A program made the position numbers and the translations under genes. A stretch of DNA of 62,657 nucleotides, counting the filler, from Choristocarpus tenellus KU-1152 (taxonomy: Eukaryota; Protista; Phaeophyceae), in assembly GCA_964200185.2 (NCBI GenBank). It is 10 parts of 10 records of this genome, joined end to end, with 100 filler letters (N's around TTAATTAATTAA, not from the genome) between each part and the next. Parts side by side here need not be neighbours in the genome. Positions count along the whole stretch, not along the records: positions 25,207 to 40,788 come from CAXNAD020000969.1; 9 more parts are not named here. One strand, written 5' to 3'. The notes beneath the pieces are model-generated. The model saw only the letters and a program-made list of their open reading frames with translations, did not search any database and had not been told where the DNA came from. Shown piece by piece: positions 2,961 to 40,914 of this stretch. How positions within the stretch are numbered: the stretch's first letter is position 1; each line of letters opens with the position of its first letter.

Positions 2961-5900
2961 TCATGATAACTGATTCTGCTTCCCAAAGCACATTTCTCGA
3001 ATACGCAATGCATGATGCAGGGACGCCTTGGCAGCTTCCTGCTCGTCCTGAGCAGAAACCCCAGGGCCCAAAAGATTCTTCCTGCTATCCAACAGCTCCT
3101 GCTCCTCAATAGCTGGCTCACAGTCCTCGGCTCCAACCTTTACCTCCCCCTCATTCTGATTGTTCAGATTACATTCATTCCGAGCAGCAATCAACCAAGA
3201 GAGACTTTGACTAAGATCCTGATACAGAGCAGCTATCTCCGGTGTGGCAGCACTGCCACAGATACCTTCTATGCAAGAAAGCGCCAGACATAGGTGTTTT
3301 GCTCTCTTCCTCAGCAAACATACCACACGCAGGCTACAAATATTATTTCCTCTATTTTTCCCTCTACCCACCCTGCTTTCGCTATCACCTCCACACTCCC
3401 TGTCCGATGGAAGAAGTCCCTTACACACACTGGCCATGAGCTGGTGCGCTTGGAGTAATAGCCGGTGGCGAGGGTGAAGCCAACCTTTTCCCCCAGATTG
3501 CTCCAACACACCCTCCAACGTCCTGTAGCCAAGCTCCAAGGCCTCTGGGCTAGGGAATGGACGTTTTGACAGCACTGCAGCCGCAACCCTAATGTTCTGT
3601 TCAGCTACCTCTGAGCAAGACATAAGTCGGGCCTTGGCCACAACATACCCACCTTCTTCTTCCTTCCAACAGAGGGAACACCTTGCTGTACATGTCCTCT
3701 CATCCACAACAGATTTTTCATTCCCAGCATTATCTTCACCTCGGAAGGACTGGAACCCTTTGCTAGCCCCCCCATCCCCCCCCAGGACCACCACAGCACC
3801 CTTGCAGTCACCTGACAGGCACCTGAGGCCATCAATAGCAAGGTCGGCAGCAGCACAAGTAACATTCACAGATTGATTCATAGTGGCCTTCACATCCTCT
3901 GTGTTTTGCATGGGATGGTCAAGAAGAGCTTGGCCACCAAGGAGTCCTGCTGTCATTTCGGCGTGAGTGAGCCCTTGAGCCTCTCTGTCTTCAACATCTT
4001 CACTGTAAGAACATTGCTGGCTCTGAGGAACACTTCCTAACCCCTCACATGCAGGCACACCACCAGTGCATAATGGAGTGTCACCATCAAACAAGGCAGC
4101 ATTACAGCTGCTGGCAGTGGACTTAACTGCAGTTCCCCTGCCACCATCAGAGGCTAACATAGCAAAGGAGAGGGCGTCCACCTCCTCGCAGCGTTGGCAC
4201 ATACACCTGAAAAAGTAAGCACGCTCAAGGAGCATCCTACGCACTGAGGTTGGCTGATAAAGATCAATGTATGAGTATGCCAATTCAGCACCAGTTGTTA
4301 CTGTCCTAGTAGCCCTGAACACCAACCGGGGGGGCTGGGGTGAAGGAGCTCCATCACCCATCAACCGGAAGGCATGGTGGCAATTGGGAATGCACGAGTG
4401 ATTGACCATGGACGCCAGCGGGAACAGGCCGAGACCAAGCACAATCTTGTCGTTGTCATGTATGGCATGGGCATTACACTGAACCGTGAAGAACAATGAT
4501 GTCAAATGGCGGCGAGAGAGCCCTGAGTCTGGAGGGAGTATTGTGACTACCCATGGCAGGAGAAGGAAGAGCAGTGAAGTGAAAAAAAAGTGTCAGATTT
4601 TGCATTTGTGAGTGGCAACTAGTTCATTCAGAAAATCTAAGAAATCCAGAAAAATCGAACAGATGGTTTTGGGGTATGTACACTATGTGACAATGCAAAG
4701 CAATAGGGAAGCTTCTCATCCCCATGCAGGACAATATTATCTACATTTTGACCTTCAAATATAGGCAACTCCAACATTTGTTTATGGCTGCCTGGCAGGA
4801 AGGCAAAGTACATTTCATGTTTTTCATCATTTCTGGGCTGTGTTGATGTTTTTAGAACAGTGGAGGTGTCTAATGGTTGTTGACAGGATCAAACCTATCA
4901 CCAGTTTAAACATCTTCAATACATGTGAATGTGCCGCAACAAATTTTCAAGACTATTGAATCTACTACAGCAGGAAAACAAAAGCATCAAAACATCACCT
5001 GAGAGCTTGGACAACTGACACAACCAGAGTAACAAAATCAAGCTTCAACCCGAACAAAACTTGAGTCAAGGAAACGAAGTAAACTTTTCTCCGTATGTGT
5101 GGTCGCTACGTTGCGTTGGATTCATTTACAAATGGAATCCTTATCACTGGAGGAAGGGCAGTCATATGCAGCTGACTGACCAGAGCCATCACAGCCTTCG
5201 CCCTACTCTGAAGTAAATAAAGTTGTTGGAAGCCAACACGTAGCCCCTCAAAATATACATACATGTATACGCAGACGTCCTTAGAACCAGGCGGTTGCCA
5301 GATATATCAAGGAGCAAACAAAAAAGATCTGGATATGTTTGAAATGCTAAGAAAGAGATGAACTTCGAGAAATGTCTTCTGTATCATTACTCCAGATACC
5401 TTAGACGATAAAATCGACTTGAAGCAAATCGCAAAGGATTTTACAGTTGTACTATGATATGAGGCTGTACTACCGCTTCGCTAAGAACTTCCATCAATGG
5501 GCAATGCCCCTTCTGGGATATTATATCATTCACAGACCTCTAGCGAAAAGTGGTAAACTGCCGGTCATGGTTGCAGTACCCCCTCCACGCATCAGAGAAC
5601 CAGAAATACATGCTTGGAGTTGACTCTGAAGATTTGCTCTCAGATACTGATATACTTGACTCACCAAGTGCGCGCGCGACTTGCTTGACAGCATCCCGCA
5701 CGGGAACGGGCGCGTCCTTGGCGTGACTCTCGAGAGTGGTGATTTGACTGAATCTGCAATTGCCACAACTCATTACAACAGAATCTGACATAAATGTCAT
5801 CGTGGCATCCTCCTCTTGCCCTTTCCCACACGAAGTACTAGGTCCTTTTTTCTCCGCGGCTAGGCAGGCCGCTATTCGCAATAGAAGGCGAAGGGTGGTG

Positions 5901-9975: not shown

Positions 9976-10023
9976 CCAAAAAAAAAAAACACGTCAAAGA
10001 AACGCCCGGTTATTATTCAAGAA

Positions 10024-10191
10024 GGGGGGGGGGGGGGGGGGGGGTCTACACCAGGGTGTTCATTTTGGTCATAACCAAGATAAGTGCACCTACATTATTC
10101 ATCCGAAGCATGCAACCAAATTACCCCCAAATCGCAACATCAAGAAAATTGGCCCCAATTGGACAGCCGCCACCCTCCCTCAGATACTTTG
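10024..10191. mobile_element. MITE family A copy
   Basis: Poly-G, then TCTACACCAGGGTG...GGACAGCCGCCACCCTCCCTCAGATACTTTG. Confidence 0.75.
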
Positions 10192-11619
10192 CGCCTCAGT
10201 CAATTGCTGCTGTCGTTGTGGAAGACCTTCAACATGCCTTTGTTTCGAACTCTCAAGGTGATGTCCCTGTGACTATATCTACTGTTCATGCCATAGTATC
10301 TTAGAGGGAGGGTCACGTGTCCATCGGGGGCATTATATTATAACCTTGTAGCGATTTTAATGCAACATGTAAGATATGAGGGTAATTTTCTTTCTGGAAG
10401 CACCTTTCTTTTCCACTCCCCTGCCTGAACCAAATTCAAAGAAAAATCACGTGCAAAACGGGCATCAAAACTGGGGAGTTTTCCAATACCTCATCAAGTC
10501 CAGAATGGACGACCTAGGGTAATCTCCCCCCCCCCTCTAGGATAGTATGGGTCTTGCTGACCTGATACAGGATCTGACTCCACCAAAAAGAGTAGTAGTG
10601 ATGAAAGTTTGAATCCGTTTTCAAGGCGAACTCATCGATGACTTCTCTACTGGGATGTTAATGTTATTTCCCTTACATTTTGCACAAATTATTGTCAATC
10701 GCACCCAAATAGATATTTTGAATGATCCATACATATTATGGGTGGTGAGGGCTTTATTCCTTTTTGTCGAGCACAGAATGGACATCCCCATGCACCTCGT
10801 TTTTCATCTCCTAACATGCTTTCACCATGCCTTGAAAAAGAGAAATTGATGTGAATACTCAGAATGGTCATTAATTGGTTTGGATCCTTTTGTCTTAAGC
10901 AGGAAATTGTTGAGATCCCTCCATCCTCTCAATGGTTTGCCCCCTGAAGTAAATAAGATATTATTGGACTTGGGCTCACCCGGTGGGGGGAGATAGTATT
11001 CCTCATAGGCAGGCGTATAATTTCTGCTCTACGAACGTCCAAAACATTGGAACTGGAAGACAACGAGACCTCATCACTCCAGATCTCCAGATGTTAGGGT
11101 TACTAGCAATAATGCATGAAGACGAGAAGGTAATTCCTTTTGCCTCAAAATGGAATAGGCAGCGTGCAGATTCCTCAAAGTGGAAGTGGATCACCCGTTC
11201 CAGACAAGAACAGGATACACGACCTATTGCTTTCAGGAAACTGAGGCAATAAATCAAGGTAATGGTCCACCCTAAAAGGTAACTATTGATCCAATTCCTT
11301 AAAGCCCTTCGACTAAGTGCAGTGAGCCAAAGTAAACGAAAAGTACACAGGTTTATGCCGTTTTGCACTTTAAGTCGGTTTGTCAATCTTTGCAATTCAC
11401 CCATATTTCTATGAATGAAGTGCTAGACTTGACTTGAGAGTGTTGATTTCTCAATTAATTGAAAATTTTCGACATAATTCAGAAAACATCCTATACGCAT
11501 TTCAAAAAAAGGTCGAATCTCGCACATATTTGTCAGCATCATTACAATGCAACTCTGTCTGAGTACCTCTCATTTATGGTAAAAATAAATATGTAGTCCC
11601 ATCATGGATATGATTTCGG

Positions 11620-25069: not shown

Positions 25070-25299
25070 GACACAGACAATAGTTTCATTCTTATTCTCA
25101 TTTCATNNNNNNNNNNNNNNNNNNNNNNNNNNNNNNNNNNNNNNNNNNNNTTAATTAATTAANNNNNNNNNNNNNNNNNNNNNNNNNNNNNNNNNNNNNN
25201 NNNNNNGCCGTCTCTTCATTCTTAAATTGTTTCTTCTACAGAATCTTCTTTTACACATGAATAAAAAGCATATTCTTATCAATCCCCTATGCCCGAAGA

Positions 25300-26210
25300 A
25301 CACTACAAGGATGGAGCAGTCCTTACAGAAAGGCACAAGGAGGGTTGTGTGTTGGATGAGACATGGAAGATCGAAGAAGTTTTAGGGGGGCGAGTAAATG
25401 ACCCGATCTTTGCTAGGATGTACGTGGATGACAGTGTGCTTGTAGATATCCAATAGTTTGATGATGGGAAGAGATTATACAGTTGGCAAACGAGTTCCTT
25501 AATGTTCGACCATATTCGACTGTTAGGATCTAGGAAAGGAGGGGAACCCCCCATCTGTTTTTTATCTCAAGTATTAAACTTCTTTTGATTTTAGAGACGA
25601 AACAGTGTTTAGCAATGTTAGGAAGGGAGGGAGAACTAATGAAGTTAGGGCTAGGATTATTTTTCCTCTTCCTAGGAAGAGCGTCAGAATGATGGGTGTT
25701 TGATGTGGGAGGGGGGTAGACGGGGACGCTGCGGTGAGGAGAAGAGACGTGGTATGGAGGAAAGGAGTAGCCAGGTTGGAGTGGAGGGATAGACACAAGG
25801 CAGATAAGATAGAGTTGACATTACATGGTCAAAAAGGAGACCATGGTAAGAAGGAAGCGGTATAAACGAGGTACAAAGTGGAAGAGCAGTGGAGTGAGGA
25901 AAGCATGGAGGGTTTTGAGGTGATAGTAGCAAACATGGAGTATGCTTCCCAGAACTACCACCTGATGCCCTGTTAATGACATAGAGGGATGTCGAGGAGT
26001 GGAAGGTAATCATAAGGGGCCAGGGAAAGTGTGTCCTGAGGAGGATAGCAAGGGAACTCAAGTTGAGACCGGAGGAATACGCCCTACATGCGGACAGGAT
26101 GGGGGGAGCAACTAGGATGGCAACATTGGGGGCACTGGAGAGTGATACAGAGGGAAGGGAGAAGGAAGTCGGCGGCGCTTATGGCTACGTTAGGGCCAAC
26201 CAAAGAGATC
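25300..26210 (+). mobile_element. Decayed DIRS/Ngaro-like tyrosine-recombinase retrotransposon (RT fragment + YR fragment)
   Basis: RT motif DPIFARMYVDDSVLVD..DHIRLLG (~25400-25530). YR motifs GLGLFFLFLGRASE (~25628), SKGD (~25830) and EYALHADRMGGAT...IQREGRRKSAA..YVRAN (~26075-26200). Interrupted by stops and frameshifts. Confidence 0.75.
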
Positions 26211-26489
26211 CAGTTTGAGTATCGACGGGTTTGGCAGAGAGTTGGAAGGATTAGGTCCAGCACAGGATATGCAACCATGGACTACATATAGATATCACCT
26301 CAAAGGAGGTCAAGTTCAGGCGGGGTAGATCTTCTAGTTCAAAGTTATGGTATTGAAGTGGATGATGGGGTGTTCTTAGATGAATGTGGAGTGGTATTGA
26401 GTGGTGTGGTGTGGTGGAGAACGGGTGGTGTAGTGGAAAGCGATGGAAAGTGTTCTGGAGGAAGGTGCAGTGTCATAGAGTGTGGTTGT

Positions 26490-26690
26490 GGAACAGATTC
26501 GCAGAAATTGACTGCATTGGTGGTGGGTGACTGGAAACCAGTAGCAAAGATTGGTCACACTGGTTGGTTACTGGATACGCAGAATGTGACCGCAATGGGG
26601 TGTGACTGGAAACCTGTGGCAAAGAGTGGTTGCTACGGTTGGTCACTGGTTTCACGGAGTTTGGTCGCTGTGGGTGGTGACTGGAGATGT
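26490..26690. repeat. Degenerate 75-bp tandem repeat (~2.5 copies)
   Basis: GTGACTGGA at ~26527, 26602 and 26677, with similar intervening sequence. Confidence 0.6.
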
Positions 26691-28945
26691 GCATTTTGGT
26701 AATATAGTCGGTGGGGTAACAAGTATAGTGGAGGGAGGGAGGGGAAAAGTGGGGTTATAGTGAGAGAGGAGGAGGAGAGTGGAAGGAATATCAAGACAAA
26801 GCTAATTGATGAACCCAGAAGATGTGAGCAAAGCAAAAAAAGAAAGATATACCACCGACATGGCATTTATGATTCTATCAAGTTCAGCGGTAGTTTGTTG
26901 TGTCATTTATACATGTTATTAGTCAATAGTCGCGGCACTCACATCCTCACGACCACTAGGCACAAACTTCCTGCCGTGCGCTTCCTTCTGTTTTGTTGTT
27001 CGTGATGTTGTGTAGATATTCCTATGCGCGTTATGTGCGATACACATGTACTACCATATATTACGCCAGTGACATGTATAACATATCCTGTACCCTCGGC
27101 AATATTGACACATACATATACAACTGCTACCGGTAGGACCACAGCAGTATGCAATGGACCACACGCAAAAGTAACACAAAATATTCCATAGGTTTGTAGT
27201 GATCGATCCAAATATATAAAATCGTTTTTTGTGTTGTGGATTGGTATATCTATTCGATCATATCACAGCCAAAGCACCAACCAACACCTCAGAGAAACCA
27301 GTCATGCCCTTCAAAAATTCGATCCCTTCTTTACGACTACTACTACCGCTGCTTTATGGTGCAGAGCCGATTAGAGACGGCACAAAATGTAGCCAACAGA
27401 TTCCGTGGGAGGCACAAGCACACAGAGTATTAATGCCAATAGTGATAATGTGTATCCTAAGATGTGTTGCTCCTTTGCTTGTGATATCTGATTATATCCT
27501 CGCCTAGCCCTGGAGTGTTATTAAAGGGCTCCGCATAGGTATACTTATGGTAGGGTTACTACTACTTAATACTGCAAGGTACATTGAGCAACTTCCTTAT
27601 TGTTAACACTGTTTTCATGAGTTCAAGTCGCGTAGTGCTACCACTACTTCGAGTAAGTGAAACGCGGACAGTTCATGTGGGAGAACAGGGAGGAAAAGGC
27701 TAATGCACTTCGCACAGCAATCAACGTGGAAAATACGCAGAAGATGCCGATCCCACGTAACAATTGCCGAAAAAATTTAATCACTTTGGGGAATTTGGAT
27801 TTTAATGTCGAAGAATTAGGTCTTAAAATTAACTAAGTTTCATGTTCTACGTTGTTCATTTCTAAAATTTCTTGAGAGCACTTTTCCTCTAAACTTTTAG
27901 AGGTTCCTCCATGTAATATCACAAGATTAAGCAGTCGCTGCAACATTATGTATGGATACAAAAATGATCTTGCTGCTAAGCATTCTCGAGGTCTCCCATG
28001 CTCGTAGTTGATCTATCTGAACCCATTCATCTCGAGGTTGACATCAGCCAATTCTCGTTCTGTGTTCCTTCAAGCCCAGTGCAGCCGCATCAACGCTTGC
28101 TTAATCGCAGTTCCGCCACTCTTGAGTTATCGATGCCACCATAAATCTTTTACTCCTGTTAGTATCACTTTTTAAAAAGATTGTTGAGGACATCACAACC
28201 ATGAAAGAAAATTGCAAACCTTTTTTATAAGTTGTTTTGTGCAAGTTTTTTGGCTTGCTTTACTGTTGGTATTGTTTCACAGATTGCCACAACACTTACT
28301 TATAAATACTCTGGTAAAAACTGCTGAGCACTATCCGTGCTCTTTTGCACAAAGAGCTGTTGCACTAAGAGTTTTAGCGAACTTCCGCACACATCAACCC
28401 TAACCTATAAAGAAGAGATGTTGCAAGCTCCCAAGACAAAATAATACCTGGAGTTGAACCGATGGTGACAGGGAGCACGGCAAAAATGCGCCCTACAAGC
28501 ACATCCGCAACATAAATCTACAATAGATGGGATGCACTAGGCGTACTAATACTGAGCAGCAGCACTGAAACTCCAAAGCAGGGAAAGATACCCAATTTGG
28601 TGATATACCGTGATCAATCTAAGTTTACTTTCCTACAAAGCCATTAAATATCTTCCTGCAAAATGGCACCTGGCATATGGCAGGATATAGCAATTAAGTA
28701 GCCAAAGAAGTGACAACTGCTGAATATCTTTACAAACCACCAGTATCATTTTTCAAATACATAGGTTACAGCAACTTTTATTATACATATTCCCATCCAG
28801 CACATTGTAACACCAGCCCCCATAATCGCATCATAGACTTGATGCCATGAGAAGTGTTCAGCACAAAATCATTCAAGAATGCACAAACCACGCTCTCAGA
28901 TACATGCACTAACCAGAACTACACACAAATACTATTGTATACTTA

Positions 28946-31900
28946 TTAATAGTCATCGTAGTAATAGTAACCATCATCATCATAGTAATAGTAACCATCG
29001 TCATCATAGTAATAGTAACCATCGTCATCATAGTAATAGTAACCGACGTCACTCAGGCAGTCCTGGTCATCACTGGAGATACAGGATGGCTGCGCACGGC
29101 GAAATTATAGAAGGAAGGATGGTTAAACATTTCAACCGTGTTTTGTTGTCCATGGTACAATGTCAAAGCTACAATTTGCGACAAGAACACAGAGGATGGT
29201 CTAACTGTCACATAGAATCTTACTGAACTCGCTTGAACTGGCACAAACCACAATGAAAGATTGTGGAGTGTCGTGATATGGAACAATATATATATATATA
29301 TATATACAGTGTGTGTACATACACAAGCACTGCATCCTAGAATTACGTGAAGCGTGAGGATGATCTAGAGAGAACACAGAAGAGGTCATGTATTAGAAAA
29401 AAGATTAAAAGAATCATCACTTTCTGAACAAACAAACAAATTTAGTACCAACTCTAATGCGGATTGGTGCCTTCTCAATCATACCATATGGAACAATTGT
29501 CAGTAAGGAAAATTATAGTGTATTCAACTATTCCTCTAGAGGACTAGTTAGAAAACCAACTACTTACAAAGATAGTCCATAGACTCACCGAAATAGTTCC
29601 TGAACCTGGAGAAGGTGTAGTAACCACCACAGGAGGTGTTGTCACTGGGGCAGGTGTAGGCGTCACCACAGGGGGGACTGTCAATGGAGCAGGTGTTGGA
29701 GCCACCACAGGGGGGACTGTCACTGGGGCAGGTGTAGGAGCCACTACAGGAGATGTTGTCACTGGGGCAGGAGTAGGAAGCACCGCAGGGGCAGGAGTCA
29801 CGGCAGGGGGTGTTGGGGCGCCCTGGGGTGTGCCTACAATAACGCCCTCTGTGGTGGCGAGATAGTACGTCTTGTCGGTGCCATATATTTCAGTCCTGCC
29901 ACCAGCAATGCTAGAGACATCCACCTAGAAATGTTGATAAGAAAAAGAGAGTCAAAATCGTTTTTGACAGCTTTAGACGCGATTGCATGCGAATGGAGCA
30001 ATAGAATGGGGAGTTTGTTATAACTACAGAACAGGAAATTTGGTTTCAACAAAGACAACAAAAAACATGATCCAAAAACGTGAATTACTGGTGTATATCC
30101 ATCAATCCGTTGGCAATTGATTGTTTTCCCCTCAACTCTCGATCACTCTGCATATAACTCCAACCACTTGATCTTCGTCCTATGTTTTTTCTTCCTGCTT
30201 CTCTTACTTCTTGCATGAACACAACGAAAAATACATTACCAATCAAACCCTTTACTATTACACCAAGTGTCAATATCACAGAACGCAAACCAATGTTTGA
30301 CACAATTTCGTGGTGATAGTTATGCCTTGCATGTTCAAAATTTCAGGGAGCATTTCTCACCGTCATTGTGCTGGGAACAGTGAGAGGAATATACCCACTT
30401 GTTCCTGAAGCCGCATCAAGCCGTACACTCGTCACCACACCTGCGAAGGTTGAATACGTGTACCAAAGTCGGTAAGCAGCTCGCATATGGATGAGCAAAG
30501 CATATCAGCAGTGGTTACTAAATCCTCTCAATATATCAGGCGACTAATATTATCCCCAGTCTAACTGGTTCAGGAAATAGAGTGAAACGGCTGCCAACTC
30601 ATTGGAGATGACTGAAACACCAGACCGAGGAGATACGAGTACGTAAACTATATCTGAGGATGCAAATTCGTCCTGCAATGATCCTCACCCTTGGGAACTT
30701 TGTACCACCCTGCAACGCCGTAAGTACATTCTCATGCAGCACACAATGACGATTAATGACAACATTTGCCAACCGCTCACTAATCTACAGACAGTGAACC
30801 ATATAATCATTTCAGGATATTAGACAAACCACTTTCAAGTGAAAAATGCAACATCAAAAACTTGCCTGTGTCATCCTTGTCGGCCTTGAGTAGAGGCGCT
30901 GAATTATCCAATGCCTCATGGAGATTGAATTCATCGCAGAGATGGTCAAACTTAAGAGTCTGGTGTTCCGTACACCGGACAAAACATGGAAGTGGGCAGC
31001 ATACGAGATCAGGTCATAGACGAAAGTGGTGAATGAAGGTTACTTTTTTTCCTGTGCATCTGTCGAATAGAATTTTGAGTGAAGCATTGAAGGATAGAAT
31101 CAAAGCCCAAACCATCAATCTACGACCCTACAACCACAGCACTAACCCATGAACATCATTTTCAACATTGTTATCTTAGAATGTCAACCAGTTGACGGAA
31201 TTTTGGTCTCGGTGCTGTCTAAGATCCTGTGGAGACAGTGGTCCACGTGAGTCAGGCAATTTAGAGGCTTCAAGCCTGCATCAAGAGTGTACAGTGAGAA
31301 ACCAGGACACATTGAATACTTCGATCATGTTTACGATCGAACAGCAGAGGATATTGTACGTATGATAGTCTCAAGTAAGAACATAGAGTGTGAATGGTAC
31401 AGTTTTGCGATACAAAGCACTAATATCTTACCACAAGAAAAAGGTGTGTTCAGAGAGTTGTCTACATGCTATCTGCAGATTATGCAATACAAGGTTGTAA
31501 CCAGTGTTTCCAATGTCTTTGACCTTGTATGTTATGTGAATATGATCTGTATGCTTGCCTTGATTGGAAAGTCAATGAAGGATGTGAGCTCAGACATCAT
31601 CTCCTCCATCCAGTACTGCAGGAGAGACTTGTTGGTTCCATCAATCTCAGTAGTGGGAACCACATTCGCCTGAAGGTATCATTCAAAAGACAAAGCAAAT
31701 TGATCAAAAACATCATTGAAGAAACAGCCAATAATTGCGATCCGCACATGAAAAAAAAATGAAAATTGATCTCAAATGCCGGTGCTCACGCACCTGGTGG
31801 AACATATACTTGTCACGGAAACCGCTCAGAATCTGCCTTGTGGTAGCCTCCTTTTCCCATGCAATCAGATTCGCCATGCTGCCAAAGGACTGAATATCTG

Positions 31901-34900
31901 TACAAAGAGAGCAAGTCTGCAGCTCCCCCGTGGAAGGGATATAGATGGAGTAAGGAGTCAAAGTTACTTAGAGGATACGGCCGCGTCCATTTGGGGACCA
32001 AAATCCAATGTTACGATTTTGATGTAATTTTGGGTATCGTGTTTGTTAGGAAGTGTCAATATCCTTGTTCCGAAACATTTTGGAGTAGGAAAATGTCACA
32101 AAAAAAACATCGGAAGCCAAGCCCCAGATGGACAAACAGGGCAAAACTCATACCCTCTAAGACAATTTCACTCAAGCTGCTAGTCCAGTAGAGTAATGAT
32201 GAGCTTAGTCCATTAAGCTGTAGCTGTGTGGGAAAGGAAGTCATCGCTACATGAAGATATTATGCATGACACAAATAATATGTACTGGGTTGGTTGAAAG
32301 AAAACTTTTTTTGATGGTACTAAAAACAGCGACAAGAAAAAAATTGGTGACATAAACGAAAGGACTGCATGTGCAGGTGGGGCATTTTGGTTGTAGACAA
32401 TGAAACGCACCCCCTTGTCTTGACTTGGGTCCAGGTTGGAGCATCCACACACTTTTCGTCTGATCCACTCATTCTCCTGAACAAGGCACTGTCTTACCCA
32501 TAGTAGGAAATGGAGGTTGCACAGTCAAACAAGGGTGAAAGATGTATGTGAAGCTGCCGAGCAAACATCACCCACTGCAGTGCAAGAAAAATAATTGATA
32601 TATATGCTGCACTCCAAATCAGTTTCAATGAGCTCGTTCACTACAACTTACGAGAATGTCTTGCACGTTTTAGAGCATTGATAGTCAAATGTTAGTTGCA
32701 AAACTACTTTTTTCATCCTTCTCAACAAATCCAGGATTTGCCGAAAATGTCAACCTGTGAAATGTGCTGTTGAAGGTCGGTAGTATAAGGAAGGCAGAGA
32801 CATGAGATCCTGAACTGTAAGCACAAGTCAAGGTCCAATCCTCACACTACACCACTTACATCCGCCGTGACGCAATTAAAGTAGATGAAAGTAGCAAACC
32901 GTGGGACAATTGTCATTCCAGCGAAACCTGGAGCACAAGAATGCAATCCCACGACCAGAAAGGCGTGTATTAGTACAGAAATATATGTAGAAGTGTGGGC
33001 TTGGTCACTTCAACATCCCCTGCAGCACAGGAGTTTGGAAGAATATGCTCGATATTCGGTTCGAAGTGGTGCAGCAAAGGGTTTACAACTGTCATCCTGA
33101 GAAGAAACAGTTGTGTTCACTAACGAATATCGTAGATACACACCAAAAACTGTGAAATAGAAACCCACCGTTTGTGACCACAGTTGTGGTAAGAGGGTGG
33201 TAACGATTGACAGCAACAAGGGAGACAGTGCCGATACCAACAAAGGTGTTATCTCCAGGGTAGCATGTCATCAGCTGATCGGCACCACTCCTGTGAAGTA
33301 GGAATGTGAACTCGAACTTTAGGACCAGCAGAAGGGTCGACAAGCTCCAATAAATAGGTTGTGAGACACACAAATATCTTCAAACTTTGTGGATTGCAAA
33401 TAATATATGTGGAGGAGCTTGGCAAACAAATGCAGGAGTTTCCGATTTTCAATACAACTAAATGTCCATTCACACAGTCTTGGTACAGTAACCGAACAGC
33501 TCAGGATTACCAAACAATGTCAGGACGAAGTATACAAACAAACCAAAATATGGTCTATATACTCACGCCAGGCAATACTTGTTGAACAGGCCAGTGATAC
33601 CAGGAGACACCATCGAGTACCAGTTAAAATTTTCGTTTGTGTAGTACCAGTCCATCGCTTTAGCAAGTGCAATGTTCCCTGGACAGCAGCAACCAACGCA
33701 CAGGATTGGAGAGAAATGAAGTTTTACTTCTTACTCCATGAATCATTTTCCTACTTTTTCGCGTGCTTAGTGAGGAATCTTGTGCATAAGTGTACAGGCT
33801 GACATGCAATGTGGAAATGACTGCATTTTGATGTTGGATTATTCTTGGTATCATGGTTCATCAAACGAAGCGATTCTATCCCTGTTCTCTTCCAACTAGG
33901 GTTTTCCTCTGTCCCAAACAAAATGCTCACCTTCATCTTCAATCTGGCAGTCTGAGGCACCAAGATTGTCACGTGAAAGGTGGCTCATGGTGTGGGATTG
34001 CCAATAGAATTTATCCTTCACTGTCGTCAATGTTGCTGTCATGAGATCGTCAGAGCTCCAGAGTCCAGCTGCAAAGTCTGCAGCCATTCCCGGCACAGCC
34101 CCCGAGAGCCAGGTTGTGCCATGGATAGGGGAAATACCTGCACAGATCCCCAATAAATAGCTATTGTAAGTAGGGAGCGGTTACAGGACAAAGAGTGACA
34201 TGTTCTCATACCAGACACACCCAGGACTTATCAAGCTAAGAATCCGATATCCATCTGTCTTTTTGTGTTCTAGGCAATTTCTATTTATGACAATTATTGC
34301 GAAATTTATACCTTGCACCAACAGGAGTAAGACCAATCTAACTAGAGGGAGGTGCAAAGCATTTCTATCATAAGAGTTGGTCTTCCTGAGGTGCGGCATT
34401 TTCAAGGTGGTGGAGGTATGGAAAGGTAAGTAATTGTAAACGGTAAAAGAATATCTTTAGGTGTTCCAGCACAGATCCTCATTGGGGAAACTCGTTGTAC
34501 AGCTAACATGAAGCTTCCTTTTGCAGTTCTAATATTGGGAACAACAGTAACCCACGGATGTTATGGACGGATGTAGGACTTGGACACTTCGAAAAATGCT
34601 CATTAAACTATTGCTCTGGCCTGGAGCACATTGGATGGGAAGAGATTTGATTGCATGCCATATCTTCATGCTTACGGCCTGTACGTGTATTGATTAAGCA
34701 CTATTATGGAACAATATCCATCCTCACCCGTTCCTTGAACTTGGTCACCCTTTGTCAGAAGCCCAGCATCAGAATCTGGGAAGCTCAGCGTGTAAGGAGA
34801 GTTAACCTGTTCAGACATTGAATAGGTTAGCACTGAGATGAACAATTTAATGTACTCTGCATGAATATCTCCAGGTAAAAGTTCCATACAAAAGGAAATT

Positions 34901-37900
34901 CAAGACAATTTTTCTATAATTGTGTACACTGGGGCATGGTCACATATGTAACACTTTTGTGCCGTTGGATACAGGTTTTTTCCTTACGACCCTTTATTTT
35001 TGCGGGTTACAAATCCTATCTGCAGTTTTCAACATATTTATTATGTCCAATAAATACTTCATTCTACTTTCACACCATCTTTTCTGCTTGCCCATCCAAG
35101 AGTCCTTTGAAATATAGGTTCAAATGTAAGATATATAAATTCTATGTAGTACCTCAAGTCTTCGGTATCCGTAGGTTTTGCCAAGAATTCGTGTTTCACT
35201 CACTTTTTCAAGGACCCCATTTCCGTTGTAGGCAAATTCAACGATTACATCAGACCCATATTGTGCGTTCATAGCGTCTTGGAATGCACCAAACTGCTCG
35301 AAGTCTGACCCTGTCATTCGAACTTCCTGTAGTCGAGTTGGCCATTTATCCATGAGTCAGTGTACTTGAAAATGTTGTTTGGCTATTGATTATTGTGTGG
35401 TTTGATTTTGTGGTTAAGAACAACATACTTAAGAATACAGTATAATGCGAAAGAGGGAAGATAGAAGGCAGTGAAGAAGTTGGCCACAGAATGAAAAAAA
35501 GAGAAATTTTGATAAATTTTATTGGTAGGTATGGCATCACTCTGAGCAAGATCCCAAGCTTACAGTGCCCTCATTGTTTCCACCGTCGTACACCCATTGG
35601 CCTGTGCCAAGGTAAAGATCATCCACCACTGGACCCAAGTAGAAGCGTCTTTCACCCTATGAATATGATTCAGATTTTGACAGGGAAGAAAGGACAATAG
35701 CAACAAAGCATTAGCCGTTTTGATATGTACGAATACAGTAAGTTTAGGTCTAAATCCAGTGTCTTGAAGAGTGATGTTTTTTTTTCCTTGCACCATGATT
35801 GCAAAGTCTGCATTACCTGGAATACTCCTTTGGTTCCCCACTCCGTGACAAAATGTGACCAAGCCCAGGAGCCCATATCAAACCAAGCCATGGTGAAGAA
35901 GATATACAGCTCTTCCAAGCCATCCATCCCGATCCACTCTACCATAGCGGCAGAAGGGAAGTTTTGGGCACTCAACAACGGTGTACCAGCAGCATTCGCA
36001 TATCTGAGATAGCAACATGATTTATTGGTAAGTATTTCGTCACGTCAATATGTTTCGGTCCCAAGCACTACAAGAATTAGTCACATATATATCCAAGTTT
36101 GAGGAAAGTAAAGAAACTATAATGTAGAGATTGAAAGTATCTTAGAGGGTAGGAGTTTTGCCCTGTTTGTCCGTTTGAGGCTTGGCTTCCCATGGGTTTT
36201 TTAGGACATTTTCCTACTCCAATTTTTTTCGTTAGTAGGTAAAATGTGTGCGTTATGAAAAGGTGTCCAGAACATGGATATTGGCACTTCCTAACAAACA
36301 TGAAGGTCAAAATTACATCGAAATCGCAGCGATGGATTTTGGCCCCCAAATGGACGCGGCTCTACCCTCTAAGATACTTTGAGAGATTTCATGGTGTAAT
36401 ACCTTGTTATCCATCCATGCAGTACACTAGTATATAAATTACAAAACTATAGGACCCGAGGTCGATTAGATAAGGTGATCATAACAAGGAAATAGTGTGG
36501 AGGAAAGTACAAGAACAAGTTGCCTACTGCTCCCAGAAGAAAACTTAACTATTTGACAGTGGGGCAAAAGAGAAGTCAGGGCAATAAGTTGAGGACTCAC
36601 GAGCTGAGAATGGTGGCTGTTCCATTGTCAAATGTTGTTGCGTACTGGTGAAGGGGACGAGTGAACATGTTGTTCTTCTGGGGATCAGTGGCCATGCCGT
36701 CCTTAACTACCGTAGAAATCGAGTCCCCTGCAGCTGTTTATCACGGGTTAACAAGAACAAAATCATGTTCACCACAGAACCAATCAACAACGTGAGAATG
36801 AGTTCTCAGTTGAAATGGAGTAACACTATTTCATGCATTAACCAACATTTTGCTGCACACTATTTCGTCAAGTCGAAGCACCAACCCCTTGCAAAATGTG
36901 TTCCACATCTTTGCATTTTTGATCCAAGAAGTGAACCTCCATTACGGATCCGTGAAAGCGACCAGTACCTTCCATAATCAGTACCAATCAATTCAACACC
37001 ACTGGAATTCTTCAGGCAACAGGTATACACTACGATCAACCCGTGGAATGGTTTTGTTTCGTTGGCAACAAATGCAGCAATTCTCTATTGGAACTTCATT
37101 CGATACCATTCTTTGCGAACTATAGTACAAAGCTGTTGCCTAACAATGCTGCACTCTATAGCGAGAGGTTACATGAACGTCTCGCGCATGGATGTTTCGA
37201 CAGAAATGATCGGCCTTTTATCACGTACGTGTAAGCTTCACCAGCGGAGGGACTGGTACCTCTGTCGACCACAATGGGGGTGCGAACGTCTGACTGATCC
37301 TCATCCTAATGTTTGCTTCCACATCATTAGCTGCATCGGAGCTTTCGAACCATACAAGCCGGACCTGAAACGTTTCCACAATTCATCGGTTTCTCTGTCT
37401 TTAATCGCGCCTCTGCAAGGCAGAACAAGGAGAAAAATAATGGAAGCTTCACGATGTCTTCCAGCATTATGTAGCGACAAGAGTTCTGCTGTCTGTTGGC
37501 CAAGCCAAGCTGGTTGCATGAGGAATGAAAACTACAGCTTTGACAGGAAGGTTCCACAAAATATCACGTTTAAAAAGTTATCTTCGTTGCCACAAGTGAA
37601 AGACGGTGTAACACAAATTTTCGCTATTGAAGAGGCCTTACCAACCTACGTTAGTGAAAACAGACTTCAAGGTCGTCCGTGTTGAGTTGCGAAACCGGAT
37701 TATCGGAACATTGAATGGTGTTGTCAAATACCTCTGTTCTCCAAGGTCTAAATTGCCCTAAAACAAACCTTGAATGCTCGGGCATAATCCTGAAGCTCCG
37801 TTTTCTGCGAAGCAGTCGGAGTTATTCCGATGTAGATCACATCGCACTTGCCTGTACCATCATTGTTATTCAGTGGCAAGGTATCTGTGGGAGCCACGAT

Positions 37901-38459
37901 CACGTTCTTCACAGAAGAGCAACAGGTTGACGGTGTGAGAGATATGCAGGTTACGGAAAGGGCAGGGTCAGGGCAGCAACATCAAAAATCATCACTTACT
38001 TAAATATCGCACCAGCGACTGGTTGACCACATCAACAACCCACACATATGTGAGTGGACTTCAACTACACAAACCTGGGCAGCAGACCAGAAGCCCTTGT
38101 ACCACTCAGAGATGATGTATGCGTCACCCACACCTGGTGTACTGGCATCCTGGTTGGGTGTGTGGAGGTCTCAAGATTTAGCAAATAAAAACGGATCCCA
38201 GTTACATGAGCCAAACTATCTTGAACCCTTCACTGTACAACAGGATTGAGCTCATCTTCGATATACTGTATCCCTTCCAAAGTATAAGTAGAAACTAGAT
38301 TTTCAGAGTGTGGAGGAAGAGAAAAAAGTTATGTTTTGTCATAAACCCTCTCACCAAAACGGCTGAGGTGAGAATGCATGGCTGCATATCCACAGAGACT
38401 TGGCCCATAACTGGTGAGAGAAGGGTAAGAGCACATGCTGCCAATGAGAGGCGAACCAT
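28946..38459 (-). CDS. Secreted Agd3-like (CE18-type) polysaccharide de-N-acetylase with Pro/Thr linker and Tyr/Asp tail (2544 nt, 847 aa); 20 exons: 38459-38355, 38149-38075, 37906-37769, 37364-37229, 36733-36601, 36003-35817, 35656-35564, 35326-35204, 34806-34728, 34137-33931, 33678-33567, 33290-33169, 32927-32860, 32488-32411, 31916-31794, 31669-31559, 30959-30866, 30440-30361, 29924-29589, 29089-28946
   Basis: All 19 introns are phase-consistent (17 GT-AG, 2 GC-AG) and the CDS has no internal stop. Signal peptide MVRLSLAACALTLLSPVMG. Motifs appear in Agd3 order: EWGTKGVFQGERRFYLGPVVDDLYL, EFAYNGNG, FYWQSHTMSH, PGITGLFN, GDNT, TNGFAG..IVPRFATFIYFNC, DKYMFHQAN, SLLQYW, PLTVP, EIYGTD. Confidence 0.85.
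28949..29044 (-). repeat. Coding 24-bp tandem repeat x4 encoding GYYYYDDD
   Basis: GGTTACTATTACTA(T/C)GATGA(C/T)GAT units on the - strand; variation between units is mostly synonymous. Confidence 0.85.
31959..32169. mobile_element. MITE family B, in intron 14 of the Agd3-like gene
   Basis: CAAAGTTACTTAGAGGATA...CAAAACTCATACCCTCTAAGA. Confidence 0.8.
36133..36381. mobile_element. MITE family B, in intron 5 of the Agd3-like gene
   Basis: Near-perfect TIRs AAAGTATCTTAGAGGGTAG...CTACCCTCTAAGATACTTTG; AGAGATT occurs on both flanks. Confidence 0.85.
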
Positions 38460-39129
38460 CTTTAGGTGGGACTCCTTCACTGTGGCAAGCCCTGAAGAGT
38501 CACGAAGGTTTATTAAGGGAATTGGCGAACGAACTGGATGATTACTTTCGAGAGTGCACAATACTGATTAGGGTCCAAATATCCATGATCGTGAGAACGA
38601 GTGGACATGATTTTTTTTTTACTTGTGTCAAATGTTTAGAATAGTCGCAGAAATACTCTTGTGGATTGCTGTGACTTGCAGTCACACTTGCGTCAAATCC
38701 CTTCAGGACAAGTACGAAATAGAACGATCTATCTAATATATTATTATCCCAAAATGCCTCTGACATAAAATCACACTTTATCCTATATTGTGTATATTAT
38801 TATGTCGTCTAACATATTATCCTAATAAAAAAGGAACATGTGAAATCTTCCAACTTTTCGAAATCTTGTCCGTGCAACTTGAAGAGATCACCCTCTACAT
38901 CTATATCAAAAACTGATGAGCAGAAATATATATTAGTCGTAGGAATATATAGTCGTGTCCTTTACCCTCTCCCCAAACCTTACCCCAATCCTCAAAAATG
39001 GGCAAACCAAAATGAAACGTGAGGGAGTAAAACAGAAAAAAAAGTGGACATAAATTCTGATTACATCATAATATCTACAGAGTAGTATGGGGGTAGAGTG
39101 GAACAACGACAGTTTCTGGAAATAAACAA

Positions 39130-40640
39130 TGGTACCTACGAAGACTAAAAAATATTTTTTTTGTTGTAGTATTGTAAGTGGGAAATATAGAATTACCCAA
39201 GGATATTTTTTCTGCAAAATAAACGTAATAGATATTATACTACATTTACCACGACTACTGCTACTGTTGCTGATACAAGGATCCTTCCAACATCGGTTTG
39301 GTTTTTCGTTGACACATCTGGAAAATGTGGGTAGGGAAAATATTATTCTTATTCCTTTTACAAATATTATGAGTATATTCTCGCGAATATATTTTGCCGA
39401 CTGTCTCAGTCCTATGTTCATCATATTAAGAGTGAGTATTATTACCTTCCTCCCATGGTCAGAGGTTTTATTAATACATCGTACCACTTCTCACATTACT
39501 TGTTACTACCTACTGTGCGATTATGTTATGTACTAACTCCGTTCATGTCCTTCTCTCGTATATATGGTACACATACATGTATGTACGTATATATTATGGT
39601 GCATCACCTTCCTCCCATATAGTCAGAGGTATTATTGATAAATCGCACCACTTCTCACATTATTTGCTACTAAGATATACCTTCTGTGCGACTATCGAAT
39701 GTACTTGCAAACAACAGATGTACTTAGTTCATGTCCTCCTTCTCGTATATGTGCATGTGTATATTACTATGCCGATTTACATCTTGAACATGTCATGGAA
39801 GGAAGATTATCATACACATATTTTGCCGTTGAAGAACATTAATAATTTTTATTAAGTGGACGTATTAGTAAGGATTACCATCAACTAAAATCGATCATAG
39901 AAAAATGTTTCTCACATTTGCGACAACTGTTGCTTTTTCAGGGGTTGTTCTAATATTTGACTGGCTTTTCATTGGTTTTTCCCCTAACACCTATCTGTAA
40001 AATGTAAGAGGGTATAATAATAAAAATATCATCAACTTCAGTACGGGGACTATGTCTACCAATAATGGTTAGAGTCGTAACGTTACACTACTTCTAACAC
40101 TGTTTTTATTTTATTATTATGACCTCTGACATTTTATGGATGTGTCAGGTGTGAAACAAATGAAAACTATCACAATGCAATATATCCCCCCTGACACATC
40201 TGCAAAATGTCAGAGGGCATAATAATAAAATACAATGTTTGATAGTGGTGAAGTAACTGATAGATTAGTGGTTTCCACACTTACAGTGTTTTATAGTCTT
40301 CTCACGTTTAGGATATTATATTTCTTTAGGGCTAATAACGACATATGAATTTTATTATTATGCCCTCTCTAATATTTTGCCGATGTGTCAGGGGGGAAAC
40401 CAATGAAAACTATACGTATGTCGTTATTAGCTCTAAAGAAATAAAATCATATGTATTTTATTATTATGCCCTCTGACATTTTGCAGATGTGTCAGGGGGG
40501 AAACCAATGAAAACTATATATTATATATATGTGTCAGGGAACATATGTATTGTTTTCATTGGTTTTCCCCCTGACACATCTGCAAAATGTCAGAGGGCAT
40601 AAATACTTTATTGAAAACTATACATATGTCAGTATATGTG
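39130..40640. repeat. Cluster of family C AT-rich repeats in direct and inverted orientation
   Basis: CCCCTGACACATCTGCAAAATGTCAGAGGGCATAA and its reverse complement recur at ~40120, 40190, 40360, 40465 and 40568, with degenerate copies at 39310 and 39980. Confidence 0.85.
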
Positions 40641-40914
40641 GAAAGCATGTTTGTCTGTTGCTACACTGTTACTACTGCTGTATGTCATATACAGTCATAC
40701 CGTTGTACCGATTGAGGTTCCCAGTCAAGCATCCATGATTCCTCTGGCGGACCTTCCGTCAGAATGAAACCATGGAATCTCTTCACGTNNNNNNNNNNNN
40801 NNNNNNNNNNNNNNNNNNNNNNNNNNNNNNNNTTAATTAATTAANNNNNNNNNNNNNNNNNNNNNNNNNNNNNNNNNNNNNNNNNNNNGTTGGGGGGGTG
40901 AGGTGGGTGGGGTA

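Follow-up and report, generated by a model that had tools for sequence, protein, structure and literature searches.

An intron-rich gene of the brown alga Choristocarpus tenellus probably encodes a secreted Agd3-like (CE18) deacetylase of a family shared with phaeovirus-like giant viruses

Agd3 of Aspergillus fumigatus, a secreted protein, joins a deacetylase domain of carbohydrate esterase family 18 (CE18) to a carbohydrate-binding module (CBM) of family CBM87 (structure 6NWZ), and roles have been assigned to its catalytic residues: D377 is the base, D378 and H510/H514 are the metal ligands, R613, an arginine late in the sequence, positions the base, and H668 is the catalytic histidine (PMC7229062). 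Bacterial homologs of Agd3 are paired with genes of glycoside hydrolase (GH) family GH114, as in described operons (PMC7229062) and in a locus of a Silvanigrellaceae metagenome-assembled genome (MAG) considered below. Here we analyze a stretch of DNA of 62,657 nucleotides from Choristocarpus tenellus KU-1152 (the window, at its full length), for which an earlier note, made from the sequence alone, had proposed a hidden 20-exon gene for a secreted Agd3/CE18-like exopolysaccharide deacetylase in an alga-like genome. The gene lies on the minus strand of the piece at 25207-40788, which is the entire contig CAXNAD020000969.1 (15,582 bp, no N) of assembly GCA_964200185.2. The genome is that of a brown alga, C. 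tenellus being placed in the Phaeophyceae by NCBI taxonomy. That the gene is real, intact, and resident and encodes an apparently secreted, metal-dependent carbohydrate deacetylase of the CE18 type seems to us highly probable. The explanation that best covers the evidence as a whole, and one we consider likely, is a nuclear C. tenellus gene of 20 exons and 847 codons for a secreted Agd3-like deacetylase, belonging to a family shared with phaeovirus-like giant viruses.

Rebuilding the minus-strand model from the window sequence reproduced the earlier note's reading frame exactly: 20 exons (38459..28946) join into 2544 nt, that is, 847 codons with a single terminal stop, and the two alternative frames of the joined exons contain 35 and 56 stops. 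GC content is 0.50 in the exons and 0.40 in the introns of this model. The 19 introns are 124-599 nt long, 17 of them GT-AG and 2 GC-AG; the GC-AG introns are consecutive (introns 16 and 17, in the regions of 31558-31557 and 30865-30864), and both are in the GenBank model. The latter, CAM9244706.1 (here P0001), is the sole called gene of the contig, a 721-amino-acid (aa) "unnamed protein product" that maps to the minus strand of the window at 100% as 17 canonically spliced exons between 37304 and 28946. Searches and folding used exon pieces, P0001, and P0075, a full-length ortholog from Discosporangium mesarthrocarpum with the same exon plan; the joined 847-aa sequence was used only for counting stops and for coordinates.

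The likeness to Agd3 that the earlier note had claimed holds in profile, sequence, and structure. P0001 matches the Pfam family Agd3_CE (PF25115) at 169.1 bits against a cut-off of 27.6 (E 2e-49), covering profile positions 4-363 of 366, and three separate exon pieces match the same profile individually and in colinear order; the exon 10 piece, which carries the His motif, had no Pfam match and no PDB match when searched alone. Among PDB sequences the sole strong match to P0001 was Agd3 6NWZ (E 3e-33, query residues 50-580). All four Agd3 motifs named in the earlier note are present and in the order found in Agd3, starting at aa 268 (VVDD), aa 404 (SHTMSH), aa 512 (PRFAT), and aa 589 (YMFHQAN), and they align to the Agd3 catalytic residues: VVDD (aa 268-271) to QIDD with D377/D378, SHTMSH to SHTFTH with H510/H514, and PRFAT to PRWAT with R613, whereas YMFHQAN, which is split by the exon 15/16 junction, is identical in Agd3 and its His aligns to H668. 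Across a 36-sequence family alignment the catalytic columns are invariant or at least 90% conserved overall, with the Asp-Asp pair invariant, both His of motif 2 at least 90% conserved, and the late Arg conserved.

Aligning a structure prediction to Agd3, a check that the earlier note had proposed, gave Z values of about 43. The AlphaFold2 model of P0001 (predicted local distance difference test [pLDDT] 81, predicted template modeling score [pTM] 0.80; residues 605-721, including the linker, disordered) matches 6NWZ at a Foldseek E value of 6e-33 and, in VIA, at Z 42.9 with a root-mean-square deviation (rmsd) of 3.1 Å over 520 residues, model residues 1-589 corresponding to Agd3 249-794. The model of P0075 (pLDDT 87, pTM 0.89) reaches Z 43.8 with an rmsd of 2.6 Å over 600 residues, residues 24-715 corresponding to Agd3 142-784. 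The next-best structures were the N-deacetylase domain of human NDST1 (Z ~22) and CE4 enzymes and PelA (Z 11-15), the CE4 structures being far below Agd3, and the CE4 (NodB-type) Pfam family gave no match. To judge from these models, the complete three-domain architecture would start directly after the leader peptide, with its first part encoded by the 5' exons that our model adds to the public one. The features of the gene, in window coordinates, are as follows.

38355..38459, minus: exon 1, aa 1-35; start codon (the first ATG in the open frame), signal-peptide-like segment at 38459-38400, and beginning of the mature protein; GTGAGA donor; aligns with the N-termini of P0075, P0077, P0078, P0079, and P0031; missing from the GenBank model
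38075..38149, minus: exon 2, aa 36-60, 75 nt, phase 0; identity 13/18 to 14/25 with P0075, P0077, and P0079
37769..37906, minus: exon 3, aa 61-106, 138 nt; tblastn E 3e-10 (P0031) and five more relatives
37229..37364, minus: exon 4, aa 107-152, 136 nt; internal ATG at 37304 is the GenBank start; 37364-37305 matches relatives
36601..36733, minus: exon 5, aa 152-196, CBM87-like domain; exact map of P0001
35817..36003, minus: exon 6, aa 196-258, end of the CBM87-like domain; Trp aligning to Agd3 W344
35564..35656, minus: exon 7, aa 259-289; motif 1 VVDD at 35629-35618; D270 putative base, D271 putative metal ligand
35204..35326, minus: exon 8, aa 290-330; exon piece alone matches Pfam Agd3_CE positions 20-68, E 3e-5
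34728..34806, minus: exon 9, aa 331-357; P0001 map
33931..34137, minus: exon 10, aa 357-426; motif 2 SHTMSH at 33997-33980; H405 and H409 putative metal ligands
33567..33678, minus: exon 11, aa 426-463; P0001 map
33169..33290, minus: exon 12, aa 463-504; P0001 map
32860..32927, minus: exon 13, aa 504-526; motif 3 PRFAT at 32904-32890 (R513); Pfam match of the exon alone, E 2e-5
32411..32488, minus: exon 14, aa 527-552; Cys-rich insert, a gap in the Agd3 sequence alignment
31794..31916, minus: exon 15, aa 553-593; ends in YMFHQ, H592 putative catalytic acid; Pfam match of the exon alone
31808..31664, minus, across an intron: motif 4 YMFHQAN, exons 15 and 16
31559..31669, minus: exon 16, aa 594-630; GC-AG intron after; P0001 map
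30866..30959, minus: exon 17, aa 631-662; GC-AG intron after; P0001 map
30361..30440, minus: exon 18, aa 662-688, C-terminal β-sandwich
29589..29924, minus: exon 19, aa 689-800; end of the β-sandwich, then a Pro/Thr/Val-rich linker; 39-nt repeat, 4.7 copies, at 29606-29789
28946..29089, minus: exon 20, aa 801-847 and stop; Cys-x-x-D-D-x-D-C-L element, then four acidic Tyr/Asp-rich octapeptides; 24-nt repeat, 4.2 copies, at 28952-29051

The 5' extension was chosen by enumerating GT/AG combinations from the ATG at 38459 and keeping those that stayed open and in frame. Among the combinations that add 126 codons, one has all-canonical sites (donors GTGAGA, GTTTGT, and GTTTGT); it consists of exons 38459-38355, 38149-38075, and 37906-37769, with exon 4 lengthened to 37364. 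The N-terminus it encodes is hydrophobic (9-residue Kyte-Doolittle means of 1.6-2.5) and is followed by the family-conserved V-D-x-Q-P-C-I-L, so that the signal peptide of the earlier note is borne out as a signal-peptide-like segment. Exons 1-4 are each colinear with the N-termini of relatives: exon 3 and the upstream part of exon 4 are matched by tblastn (P0031 and five others, as listed), and the full-length relatives share a hydrophobic leader, V-D-L-Q-P-C-I-L, and then D-A-Y-x-x-S-x-[WF]-Y-K-G-[FY]-W, which match window exons 1 and 2. Exon sizes, taken for the orthologs from exact splice maps of annotated genes, are also conserved. The window gene has exons of 105, 75, 138, 136, 133, 187, 93, 123, 79, 207, 112, 122, 68, 78 ... 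nt; D. mesarthrocarpum P0075 (L009) has 117, 75, 138, 136, 133, 187, 96, 120, 73, 213, 112, 125, 68, 81 ... nt; and Scytosiphon promiscuus P0079 (L010) has sizes of 75, 138, 79, 68, and 78 nt in common with the window gene.

Because the upstream exons match relatives' N-termini and exon sizes are conserved, we judge the 20-exon model the better one and CAM9244706.1 to be truncated, apparently starting at an internal Met without the leader peptide, the first three exons, and part of the fourth. Since its structural model begins at Agd3 residue 249 and CBM87 spans residues 141-364, CAM9244706.1 would also be without approximately the first half of the CBM87-like domain. The 20-exon model thus corrects a truncated public gene model. 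The gene was "hidden", as the earlier note put it, in that GenBank leaves it unnamed and N-terminally truncated, but it had already been called publicly, and its relatives in Ectocarpus are named automatically in UniRef. At the other end, the last exon is not an artifact, because a similar Cys/Asp element with acidic repeats after it occurs in the Discosporangium paralog P0076. That the Tyr/Asp tail serves to cross-link or to bind cations in the wall is no more than a guess.

Compared with Agd3, then, the algal protein shows the same order of an α/β/α domain, a distorted (β/α)7 deacetylase domain, and a β-sandwich, aligned catalytic motifs, apparent secretion, and a structural match extending over 520-600 residues. 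It differs in lacking the long Ser/Thr-rich N-terminal region, its fold starting right after the signal peptide; in having the extra Cys-rich insert encoded by exon 14; in ending in a Pro/Thr linker and an acidic Tyr/Asp repeat tail; and in being encoded by a multigene family, with 19 introns in the window gene. The bacterial homologs share the CE domain and catalytic motifs with the algal protein but, unlike it, have a strong Pfam CBM87 match and adjoining GH114 genes, and in the phylogeny they cluster with fungi and Physarum, well away from the algal clade; the link to GH114 is one of gene pairing in bacteria and, in brown algae, one of genome co-occurrence plus one fusion to a GH114-associated domain. 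The N-deacetylase domain of NDST1 (heparan sulfate N-deacetylase/N-sulfotransferase) resembles the algal protein across the N-terminal and deacetylase domains, yet identity is 13-14%, and the algal proteins have no sulfotransferase domain and no Pfam HSNSD-CE match at E 0.01 or better. With CE4 deacetylases and PelA the algal protein shares the general metal-dependent deacetylase fold and the motif order, but its Arg occupies a late position, as it does in Agd3.

The gene belongs to a large brown algal family, the size of which the earlier note did not foresee. A protein search with P0001 returned 50 proteins, and a whole-library protein search with the exon piece 33899-34180 (minus strand) returned 71 relatives, including P0001; many of these 71 are exon-sized fragments, as is to be expected when intron-rich genes are called on short contigs. 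There are at least three copies in Choristocarpus, two in Discosporangium, and many each in Scytosiphon, Pylaiella, and several Ectocarpus species, and the family also occurs in Sphacelaria, Hapterophycus, and Undaria. Many Ectocarpales members carry WSC (PF01822) or extensin-like modules. The Ectocarpus siliculosus entries are called "conserved unknown protein" in NCBI, and some are called "Agd3 deacetylase domain-containing protein" in UniRef (automatic naming). On HiC_scaffold_7 of Undaria pinnatifida, P0083, P0086, and P0088 are consecutive models (g02457-g02459) that form one clade in the tree, which suggests a local tandem expansion.

The nearest relatives of the window gene are all brown algal (59-68% identity); relatives with the fungal-type domain set (CBM87, Agd3_CE, and Agd3_C) are 28-30% identical and a Physarum relative is 23% identical. 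Of two scans of bacterial genomes, the first found no relative, and the second, whose profile was led by a fungal sequence, yielded a single MAG, that of the Silvanigrellaceae (L008). In two quick maximum-likelihood trees (LG+C20, with SH-aLRT support), which between them included the fungal, bacterial, and stramenopile homologs that the earlier note had wished to see compared, the algal, viral, and intronless metagenome sequences form one clade. Within it, a group of Choristocarpus and Discosporangium sequences to which the window gene belongs has 99-100% support; the deep order of the algal/viral clade, including the position of the viral branch, is poorly settled in both trees. Because relatives occur in at least 10 brown algal taxa and intron positions are common across orders, the gene is supported as a resident of the brown alga and no contaminant, in agreement with the earlier note, which had taken the introns to mean a domesticated gene and not bacterial contamination. 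Intron positions shared with Discosporangium and Scytosiphon indicate that the family was intron-bearing before the Choristocarpus/Discosporangium and Scytosiphon lineages separated.

Relatives in giant viruses were likewise not foreseen. We found intronless relatives, at 48-50% identity, on three IMG/VR contigs. On one of them (IMG/VR 3300031695_000013, L004:4588-20697) an intronless 763-aa Agd3_CE gene lies among genes for VLTF3 (the poxvirus-type late transcription factor), a D5-type helicase-primase, a CHASE-domain hybrid histidine kinase, and an SWIB/MT-A70 protein, and the genes of a second contig (L003) are arranged in the same order. Since hybrid histidine kinases typify phaeoviruses (EsV-1, for example), the contigs have the appearance of phaeovirus-like Nucleocytoviricota. 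Across the family, an ancient host-virus exchange, in either direction, appears likely; the window gene itself is not viral.

The enzymes that surround Agd3-type deacetylases elsewhere are partly represented in brown algae. GH114, the family of the α-1,4-galactosaminidase Ega3, is among the most populated GH families of brown algae, with ~5 genes per genome (PMC11468063), and is listed among the markedly amplified families in these algae (Phaeoexplorer preprint, bioRxiv 10.1101/2024.02.19.579948). Neither of these texts names a deacetylase or CE18, and the text supplements of PMC11468063 have no entries for CE18, GH135, GH114, CBM87, or CE4. The EukProt protein P0080, which groups with the Ectocarpales copies in the tree, has Agd3_CE fused to the GH114-associated domain PF14741. 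In the Silvanigrellaceae MAG (L008:2799-9448), a unit made up of a CBM87+CE18 deacetylase gene and, after it, a GH114 hydrolase gene is duplicated in tandem, with a transglutaminase-elicitor-like gene upstream. No cluster of galactosaminogalactan (GAG) genes surrounds the Agd3 relative of Hyaloscypha.

A second type of partner is represented by Spherulin4 (PF12138), the Pfam family of the fungal GAG hydrolase Sph3 (GH135). The Spherulin4 protein encoded on an intronless metagenome scaffold (L002) has a 63%-identical, intron-bearing homolog in Ectocarpus sp. 12 (L006:8888-13956, adjoining a TM231 gene), and a search with the Ectocarpus protein found relatives only in Ectocarpus species, three EukProt models, and metagenome proteins. 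We found no paper naming a Spherulin4/GH135 family in brown algae. On the L002 scaffold itself the Spherulin4 gene and an Agd3_CE gene are 4 kb apart (4804-5709 and 10001-11524), with an HNH homing endonuclease nearby, many open reading frames (ORFs) without matches, and a neighboring 1122-aa protein that has no Pfam or Atlas match; the source of this scaffold could be a giant virus or a protist.

By analogy with Agd3, the protein would enter the secretory pathway and then act in the extracellular matrix, where it would remove acetyl groups from a polysaccharide. A divalent metal would be coordinated by Asp271, His405, and His409, with Asp270, which Arg513 would position, serving as the base and His592 as the acid; the Pro/Thr linker and acidic tail may tether the protein in the matrix. 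If the substrate were a polymer of α-1,4-linked N-acetylgalactosamine (GalNAc), its deacetylation would render it cationic and adhesive. An alga-made, α-1,4-GalNAc-containing polymer of the GAG/Pel type is our leading idea because of the GH114 and GH135 context, and we put it forward tentatively. Several results weigh against so close a parallel with the fungal system. The CBM87 profile (PF25116) has no match at E 0.01 or better in P0075 or P0001, so that of the profile matches the earlier note had proposed to look for, the one to the deacetylase domain was found and the one to CBM87 was not, even though the N-terminal fold of the P0075 model aligns from Agd3 residue 142. Of the two substrate-binding Trp residues of the Agd3 CBM, W344 has an equivalent in the alignment to the 6NWZ sequence, and W292 is aligned with a His. 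The algal/viral clade stands apart from fungi, Physarum, and the bacterial MAG on a branch of 2.76 changes per site, and given this branch and an identity to Agd3 of only 26-28%, specificity may have shifted. No partner gene from a GAG-type cluster (uge3, gtb3, agd3, ega3, and sph3) is found on the 15.6-kb contig, no search having been made for a synthase or epimerase, and no Spherulin4 relative came from Choristocarpus in the search described above; the partner genes that the earlier note had proposed searching for are thus present in part, as amplified GH114 in brown algae and a GH135-like gene in Ectocarpus. Finally, we found no report of galactosamine polymers in brown algae, monosaccharide composition papers included, and no paper on CE18, Agd3, GAG, or a GAG pathway in brown algae or phaeoviruses, as the earlier note, aware of no such pathway, had anticipated.

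These points lend weight to a rival in which the same type of enzyme acts on another substrate, namely, the O-acetyl groups of fucose-containing sulfated polysaccharides, another brown-algal matrix glycan, or a glycan containing N-acetylglucosamine (GlcNAc), which it would de-N-acetylate. We regard it as serious, if somewhat unlikely, because of the long branch from the characterized Agd3, the divergent CBM, and the documented acetylation of fucoidans, which are described as randomly sulfated and acetylated (PMC13380512). In its favor, too, the related CE4 fold includes acetylxylan esterases, which turn up in the structure comparison at Z 11-13, the runner-up structure is a GlcNAc N-deacetylase domain (that of NDST1), and many paralogs have WSC modules, WSC-domain orthogroups having expanded in brown algal diversification (bioRxiv 10.1101/2024.02.19.579948). 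Yet each of the four Agd3-specific motifs is retained, the late Arg and YMFHQAN among them, Agd3 is by far the best structure (Z 43 versus 22 for the next), and GH114 and GH135-like genes co-occur in brown algae. It is also conceivable, though improbable, that the alga secretes the enzyme to modify foreign GAG/Pel-type biofilms of epiphytic fungi and bacteria, as defense or surface conditioning: the protein looks secreted, from its hydrophobic N-terminus, the known makers of such polymers are fungi and bacteria (PMC7229062), and an algal synthase, for which no search was made, was not identified here. A deacetylase would, however, be a poor weapon, because GAG deacetylation in fungi activates adhesion instead of destroying it (PMC7229062), and a large family, retained widely in brown algae and with many members fused to wall-associated modules, is more in keeping with an endogenous role in the matrix.

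As to the locus itself, the existence of intronless relatives on contigs with VLTF3, a D5-type helicase-primase, and a hybrid histidine kinase, together with the placement of viral and algal sequences in one clade of poorly settled deep order, might suggest that the gene belongs to an integrated phaeovirus-like element or was recently captured from one. Its 19 introns, at positions shared with Discosporangium and Scytosiphon, its firm grouping with the Choristocarpus and Discosporangium copies, and a contig on which no viral hallmark gene was seen make this very hard to credit. On a short contig with a single called gene, one might suspect fungal or bacterial contamination, a pseudogene, or a binding protein that has lost catalysis, but this is no easier to believe given nearest relatives that are brown algal and not the far less similar fungal and fungal-like ones, an exon structure conserved across brown algal taxa, zero internal stops in 847 codons against dozens in the other frames, and the retention of all catalytic residues. 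On relatives, introns, frame, and motifs, we reject contamination, pseudogene status, and recent viral origin for this locus. Returning to the GAG/Pel-type idea, its fullest form would give brown algae and phaeovirus-like viruses a hitherto unrecognized, GalNAc-rich matrix system in which the CE18 family deacetylates the polymer in part and GH114 and GH135-like enzymes trim it, with a role in adhesion or the wall and with viral copies remodeling the host surface; this wider picture is speculative, and we hold it doubtful.

The brown algal matrix is usually described in terms of alginate, fucoidan, and cellulose. A conserved, multi-copy, and, from its sequences, apparently active CE18 family would add a second enzyme type of the GalNAc exopolysaccharide toolkit of fungi and bacteria beside the unexplained GH114 expansion; a third would be the GH135-like gene, found up to now in Ectocarpales-type sequences only. 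There is thus a testable reason to seek galactosamine polymers in brown algal walls, adhesives, and exudates. The results also widen the range of CE18, hitherto described from fungi and bacteria, so that it takes in a stramenopile lineage as well as giant viruses.

Beyond the 3' end of the gene, the contig carries a flank (25700-26700) that is strongly GC-skewed and contains short ORFs and a 75-nt tandem repeat (26496-26685). Among the ORFs flanking the gene in the window, none of which has a Pfam match, are those at 25289-25456 and 26063-26218 (both plus strand); one ORF has a YVDD motif, and another resembles the C-terminal motif of tyrosine recombinases. The flank may be a decayed element of the DIRS/Crypton type.

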